Of a stretch of 64,000 nt of DNA, positions 9,008 through 20,515 are shown one piece after another. Position 1 is the first letter of the stretch. The number at the start of each line of letters is the position of its first letter. Origin of the DNA: Orbicella franksi (lineage: Eukaryota); assembly GCA_964199315.1 (NCBI GenBank), contig OZ116698.1:43772001-43836000 (forward strand), written 5' to 3'. A program made the position numbers and the translations under genes. The notes under the pieces are model-generated. The model ran no database searches and was not told the DNA's origin. It saw nothing but the letters and a program-made list of their open reading frames with translations.

Positions 9008-11031
9008 GGTGGGCTTTGAACTGCAAAGTCTTTTCTTCTAGGTCAGGGAAGAAACACGTTTGAGCAGGGAAGTTACCTTAGTGGTGCTTAATTGAGCATC
9101 GAAGGCTTGCAGTACTGTCCAAGGGTGAACGCGCATCAATTATTTAAGATTGTCAATTTGTTTCGTATGGTTCCCCTTCGCGACACAGGTGGCCCTATTC
9201 AGCATTGACACTCCGACTCGAAAGTTTTGCATTTAGATGGAAGTGGTTTTGGCAGGGATACAAAACGTTTCACCAAGTCATCGCCACTAAAAATGCAGTC
9301 AAAAATCGTTGAAATAAAATTAAGCTTTTCTCGATATTTTAAGGCGGACCAAACCACTGACCCAATCAGTTGCCACAAGGATGCTTGTTAATTCAAACCC
9401 AATTTTCCTCGATCTCCATGTCGGAACAAGACTGCTACACGCACTTTACATTAGCAAGCAGAGTAACCCAGAGAGGATAACCCGAGGGCTGTGAAAAAGA
9501 CACGGTCATGGAGGATTGCTTTGTATTATTTAAATTGAAACATGTACACTAAACTAAGCCAGTATTCCCTATCAGCGTCTTGGACGAGAGCCAGGGGTTT
9601 ATCGAAAAACTCGTTGAAATTTTGGAACACTTCACTGCGGTTCCTAAAAAATTAACCGCTAGGAACGACCCAAAGAGGCCTGTTTTGGCAATCCTTCACT
9701 TGCGATTTTTTGCATAACTAAATATACCGTTTATTTCGAGAAGATGGAACATGCCCCAATTTGCCATGCAGGTGTTTTATGAGCGACCTCGGAAATCATG
9801 TTGTGGTTATTTAACTAATATAAAAGCAATACTGTGCTTTGGACCGAAGAATATCGAGCGTTTTGTCACTTGCGACCCTCGCAAGCCATATACAAAATAC
9901 TGTAGAAGTGATTCGGTCATTTTGACTGTAAAATGGTCAACACTTGCAGAACACCAGGCGTTGGCGTCTAAGACACACCTTATCTTACTAAGCAACAGTG
10001 TTTCAAAAATACGTTTCCCGGCTGTATTACCAAAGCGACCAACCACTTAGAAACAAAAACAATTCGCTTGGTTTTAATATATTTTTATTAAGTGGTCTCT
10101 TCTTGAGGCAATTACAGAAAGGACCAAACGGTCTACAGCTTTAACTGCTCACAAAGTAAACATAAGATCTTTTTGGAAAAGAAAAATATTTCTTTATAGC
10201 GTCGTTGTTAGCAGGTGAAAGCAACCGGTTATTTTCACTTGTTTGAAGTGAATCAGTACGCAAAAAGAACTGGGTCCTTTCGCAAGCCACGTCGTTAGTA
10301 AGTCTATGAAACCTTACTCAAACCAATCGTACCTGAAATAATATTGTCATAATGTTTCATACAAAAAATGATAGCATGAAAAATTCTCCAAACCGACTCA
10401 TTCTTTTAAATGTTATAGGTGTAGTTCGGAGAATTCAGTGGCACATCATGATGTCTCCAAATACTTGACAATATTTTTTACTCTAGTTACTGATCTACTG
10501 TATTGTGTTGTAACTGCAAGGAGAAATAAGACGTTGATCACTGTGGTTCACCACACAACGCGCAGTAAGGTGAAGCGTGCCGTGAAAATGCTACGAACGA
10601 AACTTAAGGTTTATTAAATGGCGAGACCTCTACGTGCAAAAGCTACATGAATATGAAAAGCAATACAGTTGACAAAATGGTTACAATATAGAATAAAAAG
10701 ATCATGTTCGTACAATACAAAATCTGCACCTAAAAAATAAATTGTGACTTCACAAATATAACTTATTCAAGAATCAAGCCTTAGCTTGCTACATTACAAT
10801 ATTTACAAAGTCGCTGGACTCGGTAAATCTCTGTCACAGACAGGGCCTCGAGTTTATGGTTCATTCATGATTGCTCATCCATTTTTCACGGATTTTCTCC
10901 AGACTACAGTTTCATTTCCATGTACAATGGAGCATTACTTCCACAAAGTTATGGACATGATCAGCGATCAGCCGAGTTGATCGATCTCAGTCTGACAGCG
11001 ACACCAGTGCTTGAACTGTCTTGGGATTGTT

Positions 11032-14000
11032 TTATACCTCAATGATCGCAGCCAGAAAATGAGTGTCAGCGCTAACCCATTTTCCAGGGCTGTCTTCTTC
11101 ATGAACAAACATGAGTGATTCTTCCTTTAAAGTCCAGGGTGAGCATACACCGGTTTTGCCATGACAAAAACTGTAGTACTTAGAGCTCTGTCGGATTCTT
11201 GTCACAACCATATAATGGTGTTCACCGAGATAACTTGTCTCTTTACTGACAATGACTGGGCAGCCCCTCTGAAGAAGGTTAATTATCAAGTCTGTCCAAG
11301 GGCCATTCTTCCCTTTATGATCTCCTCGGTGAATAACCTTGAGCTCTCGCCCCAGGAATGTCTTGATTCGCGTCATTTGAGCAGGAGAGGTTACTCCTCT
11401 ACCGTGAGGCGAACAATGTGATCCAAGCTTGTGAAAGATTCGGCGTGTCACGTTCTCCACCGATGTGTCCATTGTTAAAGGCAGATGTGTGGGCAAACCT
11501 ACAATATGACTTATTGATCTAAGAAAGAGAAGATTTACATTCAAATTCAATTAAATTGTAGTACTTTTCCAACACAAGATTCTCAGTTAAATAAAATAAT
11601 GAAAATTTTTACTGAGTAGCTCACAGAATAAGTCACAGCACGTAAGAAAATCCATAACAAGACAGAACATAACGCAGTTTCGCCAAAATTGACACATCAA
11701 AACTTGATTTAAAGCAAAGATGGCGGTGTAATTGACCAATGACTCGTTTGTAACCTGTTTTCTACCAATCACGCCAAAGGGTCATTCAGCTGCAATATCA
11801 ACTGTGAATTGTACTTCTCCCGAGCTAGCCATTGGCCTATTGCTTTACAAGGAGTTCTAATGTTCTTGATGACTTACCTCTGAGACAACACCGAGATAAC
11901 TTTAGTTTTAGTTTAACGACCACCACTCGAAATCCACCCTAAATTACGACAAATACTTACGGGTATCTTGATTTGGAAGTCCTCGCCGCCATGTTGTCAT
12001 AGTAACCGAGTATTTTTGTCCAGGCCACTGGACCCGAGCCCGACATGCATTGGCCGTTTTGGGGCTGGCGGTACCTTGGAAACAACTCTTCGTGAGGAAT
12101 CCTGAAATATTCGTCAGACAAAGCGCGCCGATTTCTGCTACTTCTGAGGATAATGCCGTAGTTAATGATCATATCTCGAGCCCCGCGGGTTCGCAGCTCT
12201 ACTTTGAAGCGTATTTCTCTTCCTTCAAGATGTTTTCGCACGAAACTCTCATCTGCATCGACTTTCACTTTGATGAAGCGATCACCCATCTTTGTCAGTT
12301 TGAAGAAACGTTTGCTAACCATTGTCATGTCCAGGTAACCTTCTCCTTCACAAACGCCACACAACACCCGGCAAAGTCGTTTCTGCCAATGTTTCTTCCA
12401 GTTCTTTGTCTTCTTCATGTCACCGTCCCGAAGCCCAACAAACTTGATACGGACTTCACGGAACCCTTGTCCGAGTGGAATCCGGACCGAGTCGCCCGGA
12501 CGGAGTCCCAATTCCGCCTTGAACCCATCTTCAGTCTCTTCCACTTGGAAATTAAATTCCGTTTCCAGGCTGGTTGGTTTTGCCGTTGGCTCAGTTGCTA
12601 ACGGCTTAGCTGGTGTTGTGAGTTGCGGTCTTACACCTTAAACAAATTGTGACAAGTATTTAGATTACAATAGGGTCCGAAGCATGCACGAGCGAAACAA
12701 AAAGAAAAACACCCTCGCATACGACTCAAAACGCACTATTAGAAGATGACGATGAATTCACCAATACAATGTCTGTTACTGCAATAAACGTTTTAACAAT
12801 CAAGTAAACACTCAAGTTGCGTTCATCACAGTCAGAAAGAAGCCTTTTGATAACGAAACCCAAGTCTTAGCTCTCATGTTATATAGCCTGCAAGCACGTT
12901 TAATATTGTTCCCGGAGTCCTAAAACCCATTAGGGACCCTTATACACGTCATTTACCTGTCTTCATCGACAGCCACTGGAACCTATTCCACTCTGGCATC
13001 TTTTGAACTCGTTCAGCCAACTCGTCCCATTCTTTTTTCAAGCCCGGTAAAGCACGGGTAACTTGTTCGTCCAAATTCCTCCAGTTAATATTCTGTGTGA
13101 TAGATCATCACACTAGTTACCAACAATCTTTATTACATGGTAAGATTAATATATAGTCACCCCTAACACCTTTTTATCTTGTCATTGGCAAGCAGACGGG
13201 TGACGTAAACACAGAAAATAATTAACCAAGAGATATGGTCTTGATTATGTATTACCAAATTTTCAGAATTAACAACAAAAGCAGTGAGAATTAATATTTC
13301 ACGCTGAAGACGAGACTTGCCACTGATTAGTTGGCTAGTAGTCATCACAGTCCGACTTTGGGTTGAATAGAATAGAGTGAAATAGAATAGAGTGAAATAG
13401 TATTGTATGCCTTTCAAATAGATTTGAATCTGGACAAATTTGTTGTTATTCCCTTCTTCTCACAAGAAATTCAGGAAGTAGCTAAGGGCGACATGGCATT
13501 AACAGTGACAATACAGGAAGGTCAAACGGAATAACGAAAAGAGCGCTGTCCCGTCTGCTATTAGAACAGGATTGGGGGATAAAATTGGCGTGACAATAAG
13601 AGGCTTCGCTTCTCAAACTACGAAAAGGGACAGCTCATGCCGAGACTTCTACGTGAAATTCAGCACGAAAATTCAACCCTTTTCATAGCGGATTTTATGA
13701 TTAAGTTAGTCCTAATCCGCAGTACAGCGATCCTTTATTCTAAAGAGACGATGTCGTTATAAGCAGCAGCTTATCAGGTTATTTTTGGATCGTGCTTCTT
13801 CAGAGTCCATATGTTTATATGTTGATCTTTTATATTATGCTTGTAGATCTTAGTTGATCGGTTCTGACCTGTGCTGTCTTGTTCACTAATCCACTGGATA
13901 ATCCGCCAAGTATGGCTTAACTGCCATTATTCTAATTAATCCGCCCACGCGTGTCTCACCTCATTGCTTTGATCTCTCAGTAAGTTTAGTTGGCATGGTT

Positions 14001-17000
14001 AGTATAAACCAGTAAAAAAATGACCATTTAAGTCTACCTTGGAAATCTTGCAGGCCCGAATGAGGGTTATATAGTTTTGGTTGAATTTATCAGTTCTCTT
14101 AACAATAACAATTTCATGTCAACTTTCATGAAAGCTATCAAACAACATACATAATCATGTACATGTAAGATGTTGTCCGGATGAACTGACAAATTCTCGT
14201 AACTAGAAACTCACTAAACTTATGGCAGTCAGTAGAAGGTTTCCGATTTAAGCTTTTCAAACACGATTTTTTTTTTTGAAACTGCCATGTTTAATTATTA
14301 AAAACACCCTTAATAGAGATACACACCCAAGAATCAGTATCAACACTCCTTGTCGCTGCAACTATTCTGTTCACATCAGTGTCTTCACATGCCATAAGCC
14401 CATCAGGTCGCAGTCGATACACTTTGTGACAGCCATAACCATTCTGATTGGCTTGTGCAGTAAGCACATCTGAGGGGCTTGGTAAAGCTCCTTCTTCAAC
14501 AAGACGGTGGTCACCAGTTTGCCTCGCTGTATGAAAACATAACTTTTAGTAAAACGAACATACAGTTACATGTCCAGTCGTTTGCTCTCTCCTTACTTCA
14601 CTGGTAATTCATTTTACAATGCAGGAACCCAAGTTACATTGGAAAGATTTCTCAGTGAAAGCATGCAATTACTAATCTACAAAACGCACATGTCCACTGT
14701 TCATGTACATTGTAAGATATTCACTTCTGGGATCATTTTTTTTTAATCTATCTATTTTGAAAGGTACATCTGCCAGGATCAGAAACAGCTTTTGGGTATG
14801 TTTTTTGCACATCAATCATGATTTTCATAGTCTGTGCACAGAAGTTTAATTTTGAGCACGTGAGGGATGCAAGGGCACGAGATTGACACCCCCTTGTATT
14901 CAGGCTTTTTAAAATTCCCTGCAGTTAATGCTTTCATGTGATCTCAACAGACACAGGGTAATACATGTGCATGTGATAAGAAATCCAAACAGATATCACA
15001 CTAGTAAAATTTACTGCACAGTAAATTTTGTGAAGTTGGTCCAAATTCAAGTGTAGCTGTTGCAGGTTAACTTTACCCTTGGTGCAAATTGGTATTTTCC
15101 CTTGTTTTTGTGTAATGGTAACACATAATTATTTACTATATGGCTAACTCCATGAGCTGGCAAGATGACCCATATCCTGCACTGTGATGGCTACCCGAAT
15201 AGGTAAGATGGCGCTTTCTTGCCCACTCAATCACACGTGCGTGTACCTGCTGTGGGCCGCAATAAAATTTTGTTCTTTTCCATATAATAAATCCTTTACT
15301 GACCAAGCTTGTTTAATCAAGATGGCTGGATATTGGGTGCTTATGGACCTCAACTACTTCTTGGTCCATAAACATGCAAAAATCCAGCCATCTTCAGTTG
15401 ACTGAACAAGCTTGGTCAATAACCCAAATTTATATGAAACAAAGGAAGATACAAAATTGTGCCAATGGTGCTAAGGGCTGTCATTAAGGGTCCTAACATG
15501 TAACATCTGTACTTATGCTTGATTTTTCCTTGATGCTATGGGAGAAATTGCTTGTTGTTGATACAATTCACCCACCGAGTAACAAGTTTGCTATGGGTGT
15601 GGAGAACAAGGCTACTTGTGACTCAAAACTTAATGACAGCCCTGGTACCTGCTGAACCACAACATAGCCAACCCTTGCCTTGGGCTGTGTACCACCCATA
15701 TATCTAAATTGGAGGTCAAAAATATCAGATTTTGAACACCTGGCTTCATTAGTGTATCTAAGTGTAATTTTCTGCCAAAATTATCTGAAATGTATCTGAA
15801 ATAAACTTAGGCAAATCAACACTCCTGTCTGAATGCAAAAAAGATTTCCATGTACATCTCCAGTAGGACAATTTCTACACTCAGATTACAAAGATGATTT
15901 GTTTGGGAAAGCCTCTGATGGTGGAGAACACAACATAAGAGACCTCCACCAGAAGAGTCCAGTGAGCCAATAATTATGTCACCATATCCTGTACAGGTGC
16001 ATTCACAGGTTATACATACATAGTAACCAGACCTAAATCAACCATATACACTGTACATGTACTTACCAGCTGAAATGATAACATATTTTTCACCACTTTT
16101 GCCATTCAGTTTAGCTTCCCAATAAGCAACATACTTGTCTGGTAGATCCTTTCTAAAGATAGGCCTCAAACCCATTATGTCATCCTGACTTATAGCGTCT
16201 GATAGGGTGTAAATTTCCTCCTGTGCCTCCCATGATACATTGTTATTGTGCCATGATGTATTAGATAAAGTTGGAGGATGAGTAACCAAGATATAATCAT
16301 CACCATAGTTCCAGCCCTTGTTTCTGTTTTTGTTACTGAAAGGTGGAAAATGTGAGTTGTCGTTATGAAACAAGGAGGCAATTGTTAGGTTAAAACGTGT
16401 GAGTGAGACAAATTTTATGACTTTGTGCACTTAACAATCTACAAAATTAATGTTTAAGATGCACCAGTTACATACCACTCATAATTTTAGGAAAACAGGA
16501 TTTTTCGGGTAAACAATTCTTGCCAGATTATACAAGTATAAAGGACAATAAGTACTATAAATAGGACCTGTGTTATTTTATGCTATTGCCAACATCAAAA
16601 ACTGAGCATGAAGAAGTTTGGGGAAGGGAATCCCTTGATCGAAACAGTCCCACCACAAAAGAACATGCAATGTGGAGTATGGAAATATGGAATGTACCCT
16701 TCATTCAGATGTTACTTTCTGGCTATTTAGTCACTGCTGTAAGTTCATCCATGTTTGTTTTTTGATGAACTTATGACAAATGTTCTGGAGGGTATATTGT
16801 AGCCTCCACACAGGTGTATTAACTAACTAACTGACCATCAGTAAGCTATTCTTGACTACTGACCTTTGTGCAACCTGACTTTTGATTATAGGTAATTTGC
16901 ATCTGGCTTAAACATTACAAAAAAAATTACAAAATTTGTGTATTTATGAAATCATTTTAAAACACTCTATTTGTAACAACTCAAGTAATTCTTCAAAAGT

Positions 17001-20000
17001 TGCTGTTTTATAAATGTCAAATACACCTTTTTGCAATGACAACTTTCATACTTTCAAAACAGTATTTAGGAACACTCAAAATGCATTGTCATCTGACATG
17101 GTGCCCAAAACATTGCTTCTTCTCTAATAGCTGTTCTGTTACTGCGATGATCATTCTTCCCTTTCATCTACAACTGCAGTTCATATATGAATTATTTCAT
17201 ATATACTTCACATCATTTCACTCCTCACGGGAAGATATGAACTCAATTAATTGACCTCGCTCCCAATGTGTGGCTTCATAGCTCAGTTGGTAGAGCATCG
17301 CACCGGTATCGCAGAGGTCACGGGTTCAAATCCCGTTGAAGCCTTGATTTTTTTCAGGCTTCTTCTTTCCAATTGCTTAAATTGGAAAATTTACTACGAT
17401 GATCATTCTTCACTTTCAAATTCACCAGTGCTAAACAACTCATGTAAACAACTTTACCTCCACTACCTCTCCACAGATTTCTAAGTTAAATGCACTATTT
17501 GAAAGCTCCGGAAATTTAGATTCCGCAGTTCATAATGATTTAGAAGCCATGGTATGTTAAACAGCCTTTACCGGTACATATGTTGTTACCCATTATCTTT
17601 TATATTTGTATTTCATCTCATTTCTGAGTTCTATTTAGACATGGCTTTTTGTCAGATCTGTGACTACACTTGACTGGACCGGAAGTGCTTTTAAATTTGT
17701 GAGCATGCACTCCATCGAAGCGCAGCCTGGAGCCATGAAAACATATGTATTCTCTGGCTAAAATATATAATTTATGTTGTAATACCGAGCCAAAAAAACG
17801 AAAATAGAAAAAATACAGAATATCAGTCGGCTCACCAGTAACCAACGTTGAAATTGCCTGGTATTGTTTATGAAAGATTTGCGCCGGCACAAAAATTGCC
17901 CGGGGAAATTGCAGTCAAAGGCCTCCGTCCATCATCTCGTGTTTCCTCGCACATATCCACGCCAGGAACCACGCAGGCTGGTCCACTCAGCTGTAGTCAC
18001 AGACTAGACGAAAGCTATTGATAAGTTTCACCCCTTGTCTCTTTTCTCTTTTAATGCGCAGCTGTTATGAAACCTGAGAATCTTTCCCCTCGATGAGAGT
18101 TAATAGTTAACGACGATAATAGAAACTTGAGATGTAATCGGAGTGTCATAATTACAAAGTGGCAGGAGAGATAATATTCGGAAATATAAACCGCTTTTGC
18201 TTCATTTAAATCCCTTTTGAACGACTCAAAAAGACACCATAACACAGGTAAACAGCACATTTATTTTTACTGCTGATATAGTGTTTGGGTCCCCTGTCCC
18301 TTTTGTTGTTATAACCACTGTTGTTACAAAGGTAGTCAGCAGTGACAGACAAAACAGAAAAATGCTCATTGTAGGCTACATGTGGCAGGGTAGCTGTCCA
18401 GAAATAGAATTTTATCAGCAACAAGTTCAATTTAATCCTATACAGTTAAAACTATTAAACCAGGCTGCAAAAAAATTAAAAGGACTGAACTTTTAGAAAT
18501 GCTTTGGTCATGATCAGGCATAGGTTTGATGCATATTTAAATTTTCTTAAACATGTTGGTCTCTTTAAGTGACCTTTGTGAGTTAGACTGAACATTTGTT
18601 TGGGCAAAAATAAAGTGAATGAGCCAGCCACACAAGGTTCCCCTATAATTTCTTTCAGCACTATTGTTTATCATCTACATAGACCTGCTTTAATTCTTTC
18701 AGATCTCTTTCATTGAATCCTTTGATCTCCCAGCTTTTTCATATCAAAAGACAGGGGATATAGATCTAGATGTGTCTGACCATTCAGAGATCCCACAAGA
18801 TTAACTCAGGTCAAGGGGTTGATCAATTTATAGATAATATTAATCCCTAATAAAACTCAGTCAAACCATTCTTGACAGGTTCTCATGGCTCTTCCTCAAG
18901 ACAGAGTGTTGATTTCATTTTGTGGGAAATCAAAACCCAACTCATCTTACAATACATGAAACTTAATCTTCAAAGGAAAATTGCTTAAGTTTATGTTTTT
19001 ATCCTGTTTGGGCTTAATTGGAAACGTAAATAACATACTTAAAAAGGTATGCTGAGTATTTCCCATAGTTTGACTTATAGTTTTTGATAGAGGGAAAAAA
19101 TCTTTCAGAGTGCACTTTAAAAATGCCAAACTGTAATCTGGCTTAAAAAGATTTCAATCAAAGAAACGGGCTTCATGGAAAATCCAGTTACAAAATCTCA
19201 TTGGATTTTATGGTTATTATTGAACTGAAAAACTTGTGGGATGGGTTTGATTATACTAAAACCTTAATCTGACTAGGTTGTGCATGTAAGGTGCATTGAA
19301 GCCATTTGACCAACTTCTGGAATTCTAACCCAATATCCGTAAAAACCCGCAAAGTGAAATCCACTTATATAATTAAGATTAAAGCTCTTTTAGGAGGCCG
19401 AAAGCTTTATATGCACGTGTAAATCACCGCTTCTAATTCCACTTCTTTGGTGGCATGGGCTTTTAAAGACAAAAATTTACAACAAAAAGATGCGTTTCTT
19501 ATTGAGACTGAAAAGCCGTTCAAGACAACGCACAAAAAAGTTCATTAGGAAGCTTCTTCCGATGTTAATGACAGAGTTGAACACCCAGAACAAATTTTGG
19601 CGCCGAGTGATTAAAGTGGTTTAAGTCAATCCAGGTTGTAAGTGTCGAGGTCAATTAAGAAACCTTCTAACTAAGAATTGTACTCAGCCGGGTTGTTTCG
19701 AAATTTGCACGGCTTTTACTTGTGCACTCACAATGTTCATTACAATAACAACAGGTCTATTGTCACCGTCAACAGTGAAAGGGCTTGAGCAATTTGTAGG
19801 TTAATTTCGTAGTCAATAAGAGTAATTAGGCAAGCATCAAAGCGACCATTCATTGGTTCAGTGTCGATGAAAATTGCAGGGTTCCATCAGATACCGTGAA
19901 GTGGCGAAGACGCAAACAGCGATCTCCGCAGCGCCGACAAATTAAATTTACCTTTTATCTTTACGACGATTTCTTCCGGAAAATAAAGCATGGGGTTTTA

Positions 20001-20515
20001 CCGTGCAATTATGAGCTTGGAATGCCTAAGCGGTGTCTTTGTGTTGGTCGCCTCCAATGACACACAAGAAAGCCAACGAACAAACGAAAGCTGTGGTAAC
20101 TTTAAAACCAGTCCGAATAAGTTCATTACATGGATCGAAATAAAGCAAACATAGATGGTAGAATAGTCCAAGGATACTTCATTAAAACACTCACTGACTT
20201 CAGCGTAAAACTAGGCTCTCATGCCATTTACGTCGTACGACATGTTTACAGAACCGCTTACTAAAGAATGAACACTCACCTATTTGATTTTTCGATTGCG
20301 TAGACGACTAGAAATCCCACTAACAACACCAGAATCAGAAGGCAAATGAAAACACACGTACGAGGAGATCTTCTTCGTCTTTCGCCTTTGCATTCCACCA
20401 CAACTTCTTCTGTATTTTCGACCGTCGTTTCGTCCTCCATGTTGTCTGGACAGAGTTGCGTCGTTTCCCCGTTCGGTGGTTTCTCCACAGTGGATTTTGC
20501 GACTGCCTTTACCAT
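11032..20515 (-). CDS. Type II membrane protein with bacterial-type prodomain and C10/C39-like papain-fold peptidase-like domain (catalytic Cys replaced by Ser), 667 aa
   Basis: Exons are 20515-20280, 16335-16067, 14526-14327, 13092-12957, 12636-11961 and 11518-11032. All introns are GT-AG with matching phases (2,1,0,1,2), and the total of 2004 nt is open. The N-terminus has RRRRSPRT followed by a hydrophobic CVFICLLILVLLVGFLVVYAI segment. Later motifs include RPIFRKDLPDKYVAYWEAK, YVIISA, CMSGSGPVAWTKILGYYD, PVIV...HHYMVVT and GKWVSADTHFLAAI. Confidence 0.85.
15140..15430. mobile_element. Degenerate interspersed repeat (non-autonomous DNA-element-like)
   Basis: Repeated internal motifs gcaagatg/gtaagatgg/caagatggc and gaccaag...cttggtc are present. 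It resembles a common coral interspersed repeat recalled from memory and was not checked against a database. Boundaries are approximate. Confidence 0.4.
17139..17418 (+). mobile_element. tRNA-derived SINE-like unit bounded by ~26-bp direct repeats
   Basis: Direct repeats actgcgatgatcattcttccctttca (17141-17166) and actacgatgatcattcttcactttca (17393-17418) enclose a tRNA-like cloverleaf carrying A and B boxes. It lies in intron 1 of the C10/C39-like gene, in antisense orientation. Confidence 0.7.
17272..17343 (+). pseudogene. tRNA-like sequence (Thr-GGT-like), probably a SINE component rather than a functional tRNA
   Basis: The acceptor stem ggcttca/tgaagcc, D stem gctc/gagc and T stem acggg-ttcaaat-cccgt all pair perfectly. 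The anticodon stem (tcgca/cgcag) pairs poorly around ccggtat. Confidence 0.6.

Follow-up and report, generated by a model that had tools for sequence, protein, structure and literature searches.

A gene on the minus strand of a 64,000-nucleotide stretch of the Orbicella franksi genome (contig OZ116698.1, positions 43,772,001 to 43,836,000; hereafter the window) encodes a predicted membrane protein of 667 residues whose C-terminal domain (C-domain) belongs to clan CA of the papain-fold peptidases, between the C10 and C39-like families, and carries a serine, Ser481, at the position of the catalytic cysteine. Cys-type relatives of this domain occur in many bacterial phyla, in an annelid and at two further loci of the same coral genome. 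The account we favour, with moderate confidence, is that a bacterial cassette was acquired once, became a convertase-processed precursor, and that the C-domain of the present gene is a non-cutting binder, or pseudo-protease.

An earlier note on this DNA, made from its letters, had described the C-domain as C10/C39-like on the basis of motifs. These motifs are present in the spliced product, with C-M-S-G-S481-G-P-V-A-W-T-K-I-L-G-Y-Y-D, P-V-I-V...H606-H607-Y-M-V-V and F-V-H645-E-E in the C-domain and RPIFRKDLPDKYVAYWE and YVIIS nearer the N-terminus, and profile and structure comparisons support the assignment. Against the Pfam cut-off of 26 bits for Peptidase_C10 (PF01640), the orthologues P0029, P0081 and P0095 scored 27.5, 27.3 and 26.8 bits, while further orthologues fell below it (25.9, 25.3, 24.8 and 21.1 bits) and exon 6 of the window taken alone reached 12.5 bits (E 0.17). 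All scores against the C39-like family C39_2 (PF13529; cut-off 24 bits) were under the cut-off, at 22.1 bits for the same-genome paralogue L062, 16.7 for the tubeworm Ridgeia and 14.4 for paralogue L061, and the clade of the window's gene gave no match. As a stop-free proxy for the C-domain we used P0029, an open reading frame (ORF) from a related coral's transcript that crosses the junction of exons 5 and 6. The AlphaFold2 (AF2) model of P0029 (mean predicted local distance difference test, pLDDT, 66.9; predicted template modelling score, pTM, 0.62) had interpain A as its top Foldseek match in the PDB (E 2.5e-4), and VIA-align superposed it on SpeB (4d8b) with Z 12.9 over 163 residues (root-mean-square deviation 3.5) and on interpain A with Z 12.3; the best fold matches are papain-like rather than unrelated folds. 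In the model the serine is the first residue of a long helix, the His607 position opens a long strand and the His645 position closes the next one, so that Ser481, His607 and His645 are predicted to sit at the canonical papain-fold catalytic positions. His607 also aligns with the histidine of all bacterial and Cys-type members and, as in C10, starts a strand. We nevertheless do not file the coral protein as a C10 member, because the catalytic cysteine, a defining feature of C10, is replaced by Ser481.

No protease was matched when the PDB was searched by sequence with P0029 or profile A4, which returned chance rows only; exon 5 yielded nothing usable in an ESM Atlas feature search, and a fold search of Swiss-Prot listed no coral skeletal-matrix protein among its matches. 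A complex prediction between the pro-region and the C-domain of P0081 scored 0.00; it was folded without alignments, the partner had a pLDDT below 50, and the score speaks neither for nor against binding.

Bacterial relatives were sought in one genome per bacterial and archaeal species with the most conserved peptide of the family, followed by confirmation with tblastn. This gave 52 loci in more than 10 phyla, including Planctomycetota, Actinomycetota, Chloroflexota, Pseudomonadota and Bacteroidota, with 25-34% identity to the coral C-domain over 160-220 residues. The motif C-x-[VT]-G-C-G-[PA]-V-A-W is present at all 52, and the position of the coral serine is always occupied by cysteine. In blastp searches of the bacterial ORFs with the window's gene model, E values ranged from 1e-11 to 4e-9 (small database); the Ridgeia protein gave E 7e-21. 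Coral and bacterial domains share the patterns C-x-x-G-x-G-P-V-A-W, G-T-x-C, P-V/A-I/V-I/V and H-Y-x-V-A, whereas the bacterial proteins have Cys and Asn throughout, are mostly encoded by two genes, and are without the RxxR motif and membrane anchor of the coral protein. Neither Pfam nor NCBIfam names a family for these peptidases or for the product of the gene that precedes them.

At about a quarter of the bacterial loci the peptidase forms the C-terminal part of a protein of 520-650 residues (fused, for example, at L008, L012 and L022). At the remaining loci it is a separate gene for 217 residues (geneB) that abuts or overlaps an upstream gene for 325-450 residues (geneA), as at L047 (1847-2923 and 2926-3579). 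The stop of geneA and the start of geneB often share one base or lie 2-3 bases apart (for example L032, 1922-2932 and 2932-3585). This arrangement suggests that the two genes are translationally coupled, and their products may act as a pair. In Pseudoduganella violaceinigra, genes for a PAAR-like DUF4280 protein and an EndoU nuclease toxin stand directly upstream of geneA and geneB (L047, 524-1690). No common gene neighbourhood was found among the four other bacterial loci compared with L047, and since this context is absent from all four, we did not adopt a reading of the cassette as a type VI secretion system effector.

The cassette also accounts for the N-terminal half of the coral protein. 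The long bacterial proteins and the upstream genes, which lie on the same strand as the peptidase, share the pattern (I/V)-Y-R-P-D-x-x-G-V-A-Y-(W/Y)-E ... G-F-x-V-x-S-T-G-x-H-D-x-P ... P-P-S, and the coral sequence R-P-I-F-R-K-D-L-P-D-K-Y-V-A-Y-W-E ... Y-V-I-I-S-A-A-R-Q-T-G-D-H ... L-P-S-P-S is collinear with it. Alignment of the animal and bacterial N-terminal parts with hhalign gave a probability of 94.6% and E 7.2e-8 over 108 columns; a plain hidden Markov model of the animal part found one weak match (11 bits) among the bacterial ORFs. The hhalign match shows that the earlier note was right to liken the whole layout, including the RP...VAY.E and Y.IIS region, to bacterial proteins. The N-domain and papain-fold domain stand in the same order in the coral protein as in the cassette; the linker and middle domain were matched by inspection only, with the exon 4 linker lining up by eye with a bacterial W..LK..Y...P...L segment. 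The earlier note had also called these N-terminal motifs a prodomain. Homology to the bacterial N-domain stands, but the region is not an I69/Spi-type C10 prodomain: full-length orthologues contain no Pfam I69 match, and no SpeB zymogen fold was matched. The AF2 model of the N-domain (pLDDT 82) has no clear counterpart in the PDB; its best matches, to a BLIP-like protein (Z 5.8) and to YpmB (Z 5.4), put any BLIP- or PepSY-like resemblance below noise.

Animal relatives are few. With exon 6 as query, an exhaustive phmmer search of 1.84 billion representative sequences returned 14 proteins only, the named relatives among them being cnidarian; one of the 14, a bacterial kinase with HAMP repeats, was discarded as a spurious repeat match, and the other 13 are short ORF fragments. 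Word-based searches, for which exon 5 and profiles served as queries, found cnidarian sequences and Ridgeia only. The AFDB matches V4B184 and A0A2H3KVX6 might, at a guess, include a mollusc member. Full-length annotated relatives were reached by cluster look-ups and profile search, in Pocillopora meandrina (678 residues), Porites lobata and P. evermanni (673 residues each), Montipora capricornis (667 residues), the sea anemone Actinia tenebrosa (594 residues) and the tubeworm Ridgeia piscesae (584 residues), with additional fragments in Desmophyllum pertusum. Aligned end to end, the window's model is 70% identical to the Pocillopora protein, 71% to Porites, 65.5% to Montipora, 46% to Actinia and 24% to Ridgeia. 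Members are thus known from five coral genera, one sea anemone and one tubeworm, that is, from at least Hexacorallia and Annelida. Database entries for the orthologues bear automatic names only (UniRef lists those of Pocillopora and Porites as 'Peptidase C39-like domain-containing protein'), and we found no paper on the family in the literature on streptopain, C39 and C10 peptidases in cnidarians, corals and metazoan horizontal gene transfer, including one compendium of such transfers.

In maximum-likelihood (ML) trees, which are unrooted, the animal sequences form one clade (support 100/100) on a long branch separate from all bacterial relatives. Within it, the window's orthologues group with Actinia and P0114 (100/98), and four intact paralogues from the same genome form another subclade (99/98). 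All animal members have a histidine where all bacteria have the third catalytic residue, asparagine; the bacterial Y-V-N-x-G-W-G reads F-V-H-E-E, F-L-H-Y-G-W-G-G or Y-T-H-Q-G in animals. Every animal member also has an RxxR motif 20-30 residues ahead of the nucleophile helix (R448-N-R-R451 in the window), at a place that corresponds to the geneA/geneB boundary of most bacterial relatives. The signal-anchor helix is a feature of the coral proteins; in Ridgeia and one paralogue its place is taken by what looks like a cleavable signal peptide.

Comparison of orthologues and paralogues shows that the Cys-to-Ser swap proposed earlier is real and old. Ridgeia retains both cysteine and histidine (C-P-V-G-C-G-P-V-A-W and W-H-Y). 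The same coral genome contains five further family loci (L061-L065), in which, unlike in the window's gene, a single exon spans the linker, the middle domain and the entire C-domain. Two of these, L061 and L062, one on contig C1 at 26.83 Mb and the other on C7, are Cys-type (S-G-C-S-P-V-A-W, codons TGT and TGC) and keep the histidine. L063 and L064, tandem neighbours of the C1 Cys-type copy, have serine (S-G-S-G-A-V-A-W) encoded by AGC, as against TCG or TCT in the window's clade, and each of these codon classes is reachable from TGY via its own single first step. Parsimony on the ML tree requires two Cys-to-Ser changes. The tree (99/98), together with codon class, tandem arrangement and common motifs, makes two separate swaps probable. 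Within the clade of the window's gene, the sequences place the change before the split of stony corals from sea anemones, which fits the earlier remark that TCG, two substitutions away from TGY, is no fresh mutation.

The catalytic positions vary within this clade. The nucleophile position is threonine in Porites and proline in P0019, and the His607 position is arginine in P0003 and P0113, aspartate in P0114, asparagine in P0010 and P0036 and glutamate in P0037; among the relatives with an altered His607, four also have arginine or asparagine at the His645 position. Ser, His and His are all present in the window's protein and in the orthologues nearest to it.

The gene model itself was well supported. 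Conceptual splicing of six exons gives a 2004-nucleotide ORF with GT-AG borders at every intron, and the window sequence contains no N letters. Raw polyadenylated (polyA) RNA-seq reads from run X24, mapped on window positions 11000-16999, gave the exact joints 11518|11961, 12636|12957, 13092|14327 and 14526|16067 with 27-37 reads each, and a loose end at 16337 (40 reads) that continues into the end of exon 1; read depth tracks the exons. The four joints and the loose end confirm all five introns of the six-exon gene that had been proposed, and show that it is expressed. Since coverage was good in one run and two further runs were nearly empty, expression depends on the sample. The type II topology proposed for the product is also supported: it has one hydrophobic segment (residues 53-71; Kyte-Doolittle mean 3.28 over 19 residues), preceded by the basic cluster RRRR-S-P-R, and all three N-glycosylation sequons are C-terminal to this helix, which fits a type II orientation. 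The ectodomain then consists of the N-domain (residues 113-235), the linker, the middle beta-rich domain and the papain-fold domain (residues 456-667). From its sequence pattern the exon 4 linker would be helical, and Cys541 is the likely disulphide partner of Cys477. The features of the gene and its paralogues are collected in Table 1.

Table 1. Features of the papain-fold gene in the window and positions of its same-genome paralogues (aa, residues of the 667-residue product; TM, transmembrane).
Feature	Position	Strand	Evidence
Exon 1, aa 1-78 plus 2 nt: start ATG (20515-20513), cytoplasmic tail, TM helix	20280..20515	-	ORF, hydrophobicity, RNA loose end
Predicted signal-anchor TM helix, aa 53-71	20359-20303	-	hydrophobicity
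Exon 2, aa 79-168: stalk, two N-glycosylation sequons, first half of N-domain	16067..16335	-	RNA joint 14526|16067
Start of N-domain within exon 2 (aa 113); RPIFRKDLPDKYVAYWE and YVIIS here	16235	-	hhalign to bacterial N-domain
Exon 3, aa 169-235: second half of N-domain (QTGDH...LPSPSD...C201...C215)	14327..14526	-	RNA joints 13092|14327 and 14526|16067
Exon 4, aa 236-280: linker W-x-x-L-D...W-D-E-L-A-E-R-V...W	12957..13092	-	RNA joint 12636|12957; Desmophyllum P0030
Exon 5, aa 281-505: Pro/Thr linker, middle beta-rich domain, dibasic site, start of papain fold with nucleophile helix	11961..12636	-	RNA joint 11518|11961
Exon 6, aa 506-667 plus stop TAA (11034-11032): beta-sheet half of papain fold	11032..11518	-	RNA joint; Pfam C10 E 0.17
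RxxR site R448-N-R-R451	12125..12136	-	motif, same place in every animal member
Cys477, four residues ahead of nucleophile position	12047..12049	-	kept from bacteria to corals
Ser481 (TCG), at papain-fold nucleophile Cys position	12035..12037	-	alignment, helix position in model
His607 (CAT), aligned with catalytic His of bacterial and Ridgeia homologues	11215..11217	-	alignment, strand start in model
His645 (CAT, F-V-H-E-E), where bacterial relatives have Asn	11101..11103	-	alignment
Paralogues on C1: one Cys-type and a tandem Ser-type pair	G000:C1:26825328-26869418		
Cys-type paralogue	G000:C7:5229270-5229995		
Broken paralogue (TGA stop)	G000:C9:24800711-24801400		

The Desmophyllum fragment P0030 covers exons 3, 4 and 5. 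At window position 11261 the C of the assembly stands against a G in all RNA reads and in fragment P0001, a difference that changes Cys592 to Ser; since His, Tyr, Phe or Val occupies this place in other species, we do not regard Cys592 as structural. Intron 2 contains a high-copy repeat (15200-15430) at which RNA contig depth exceeds 2000 and reaches about 14,500 at one site; with its many loose ends and opposite-strand joints, it is probably a transposable element with inverted ends. Within intron 1, on the strand opposite to the gene, ARAGORN calls a tRNA-Thr (GGT) at 17272-17344 (+), which may be a genuine tRNA gene or a repeat derived from a tRNA.

Known papain-fold systems allow the coral domain to be placed. 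SpeB and interpain A (C10, clan CA) resemble it in fold (163-167 aligned residues), in a nucleophile position at the N-terminus of a helix that continues with an A-W/I/Y-type pattern, in the histidine that starts a strand, and in being made as precursors with an N-terminal pro-region. Identity is 12-14%, however, and the coral protein differs from C10 in having Ser for Cys, His at the third catalytic position, a different N-domain and middle domain with no I69/Spi-type prodomain, and a membrane anchor, and in being encoded by an intron-containing animal gene. C39-like domains (PF13529) have the same clan and fold (3erv, Z 11.6; PCAT1 peptidase domain, Z 10.8), but besides its sub-threshold C39_2 scores the coral family is not accompanied by an ABC transporter or a double-glycine leader. 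Some ABC transporters are known to carry C39-like domains that are catalytically dead and serve in substrate binding only. ACTMAP, the actin maturation protease, is the best reviewed eukaryotic fold match (Foldseek E 1.3e-4) and is likewise a C39-like papain fold from animals; according to its Swiss-Prot name it is an active protease, and it is only 13-14% identical and has neither the N-domain nor the architecture in common with the coral protein. ACTMAP is cytosolic and uses cysteine. Precedents for the nucleophile are Plasmodium SERA5 and sponge silicatein alpha, which combine a papain fold with serine at this position and are among the structural matches (6x44 by Foldseek; 6zq3 at Z 10.6). 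Both are members of the cathepsin L-like family C1, unrelated to the coral family, from which they also differ in precursor and biology. SERA5 and silicatein provide precedents for a non-catalytic and for a repurposed catalytic outcome.

In the account that we favour, an animal ancestor would have taken up the bacterial geneA/geneB cassette once, because all animal members share the fusion, the RxxR motif at the former gene boundary and the exchange of Asn for His at the third catalytic position. The cassette would have been fused and, judging from the conserved RxxR motif, fitted with a convertase site, and duplication in hexacorals would have produced Cys-type enzymes and Ser-type derivatives. 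A furin-type convertase in the secretory pathway would cut after R451, freeing a papain-fold domain of about 24 kDa from the membrane-tethered pro-region. The freed Ser-type domain would be a substrate-binding, non-cutting module, since it has Ser for Cys and its relatives tolerate Thr or Pro there and Arg, Asp, Asn or Glu at His607; it might bind, mask or present targets of the Cys-type paralogues. A pseudo-protease or binder function is, from sequence, the most likely one. Several points weigh against this account. The C-domain model is of moderate confidence and was built from the orthologue-like P0029, not from the window's own sequence, and cleavage after R451 is a prediction from the motif. 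The main orthologue group, from stony corals to the sea anemone, keeps serine (or threonine) and both histidines, which fits retained catalysis too. One shared origin for all Ser forms is not rejected by an approximately unbiased (AU) test (p 0.177), which leaves two origins probable but not proven. Finally, the unrooted trees do not give the direction or date of transfer.

The retention of Ser, His and His for so long keeps alive the main rival reading, in our view the less likely one, that the Ser form is an active papain-fold hydrolase with a Ser-His(-His) centre, released by a convertase and differing in chemistry or substrate from its Cys-type paralogues, a case like that of silicatein. 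Ser (or Thr), His607 and His645 are retained in Pocillopora, Porites, Montipora, the window and Actinia, the exchange went to serine rather than to a random residue, probably twice and with different codon classes, and the gene is expressed and its whole domain 70% identical across distant corals. Such an enzyme is hard to reconcile with the proline of P0019, with the substitution of His607 by Arg, Asp, Asn or Glu in five of sixteen same-clade relatives, and with the loss of His645 in four. A simple Cys-to-Ser exchange usually abolishes proteolysis in papain-fold enzymes, and Plasmodium SERA5 is regarded as non-catalytic. That the gene is instead a decaying copy of a dead protease, with no function of its own, we consider very improbable: the catalytic cysteine is gone and catalytic positions vary among relatives, but the 667-codon ORF is intact, its polyA mRNA is correctly spliced, full-length orthologues with 46-71% identity exist in five coral genera and an anemone, and the true pseudogene of the family, the TGA-broken copy on C9, looks different.

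The origin of the family has to be weighed separately. An old horizontal transfer had been proposed in the earlier note, and the taxonomic comparison that it called for found the animal homologues in a single clade of at least Hexacorallia and Annelida, apart from bacterial relatives that are all Cys-type and spread over many phyla. The direction is not shown by an unrooted tree, and the family is not confined to corals. We regard transfer from bacteria as plausible from the sequences, and favour it because the family is broad in bacteria, has its operon form there and is rare in eukaryotes; any such transfer would have to be ancient. Vertical inheritance of an old eukaryotic or animal family with many losses, or a transfer from animals to bacteria, would also be consistent with one animal clade on a long branch, with a tree that has no root and with the presence of the family in two distant animal phyla. 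We think this unlikely, given the mere 14 matches, with cnidarians as the named relatives, among 1.84 billion representatives, the word-based searches that found cnidarians and Ridgeia only, the spread of the bacterial family over more than 10 phyla in an overlapping two-gene form typical of bacteria, and the derived features of the animal proteins (fusion, RxxR, Asn-to-His). A more elaborate version of bacterial acquisition, which we offer as doubtful speculation, is that early animals captured the two-gene cassette as one gene and turned its boundary into a convertase site, and that corals now have matched Cys-type (cutting) and Ser-type sets, with serine arising twice, in which the membrane-anchored Ser form would be either a serine hydrolase or a decoy or receptor that steers cutting by the Cys type.

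Like SERA5 and silicatein, the coral protein combines a clan CA papain fold with serine in place of cysteine. To these cases it adds a source family in bacteria that has had no name, the probability that the swap arose twice, and a predicted processing site where two genes formerly met. With Cys- and Ser-type copies of a bacterial-derived domain in one genome, and a Ser state maintained from before the divergence of stony corals and sea anemones, it offers a natural experiment on how a cysteine protease changes. It also brings to light a widespread bacterial cassette of a partner protein and a papain-fold peptidase without a Pfam or NCBIfam name, whose probable animal descendant suggests how the border between two genes of a bacterial operon can turn into a site of proteolytic processing in a eukaryotic precursor. 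In coral biology, the protein is a candidate secreted or surface factor of bacterial ancestry, which could serve in the handling of microbes or in the processing of mucus or matrix.

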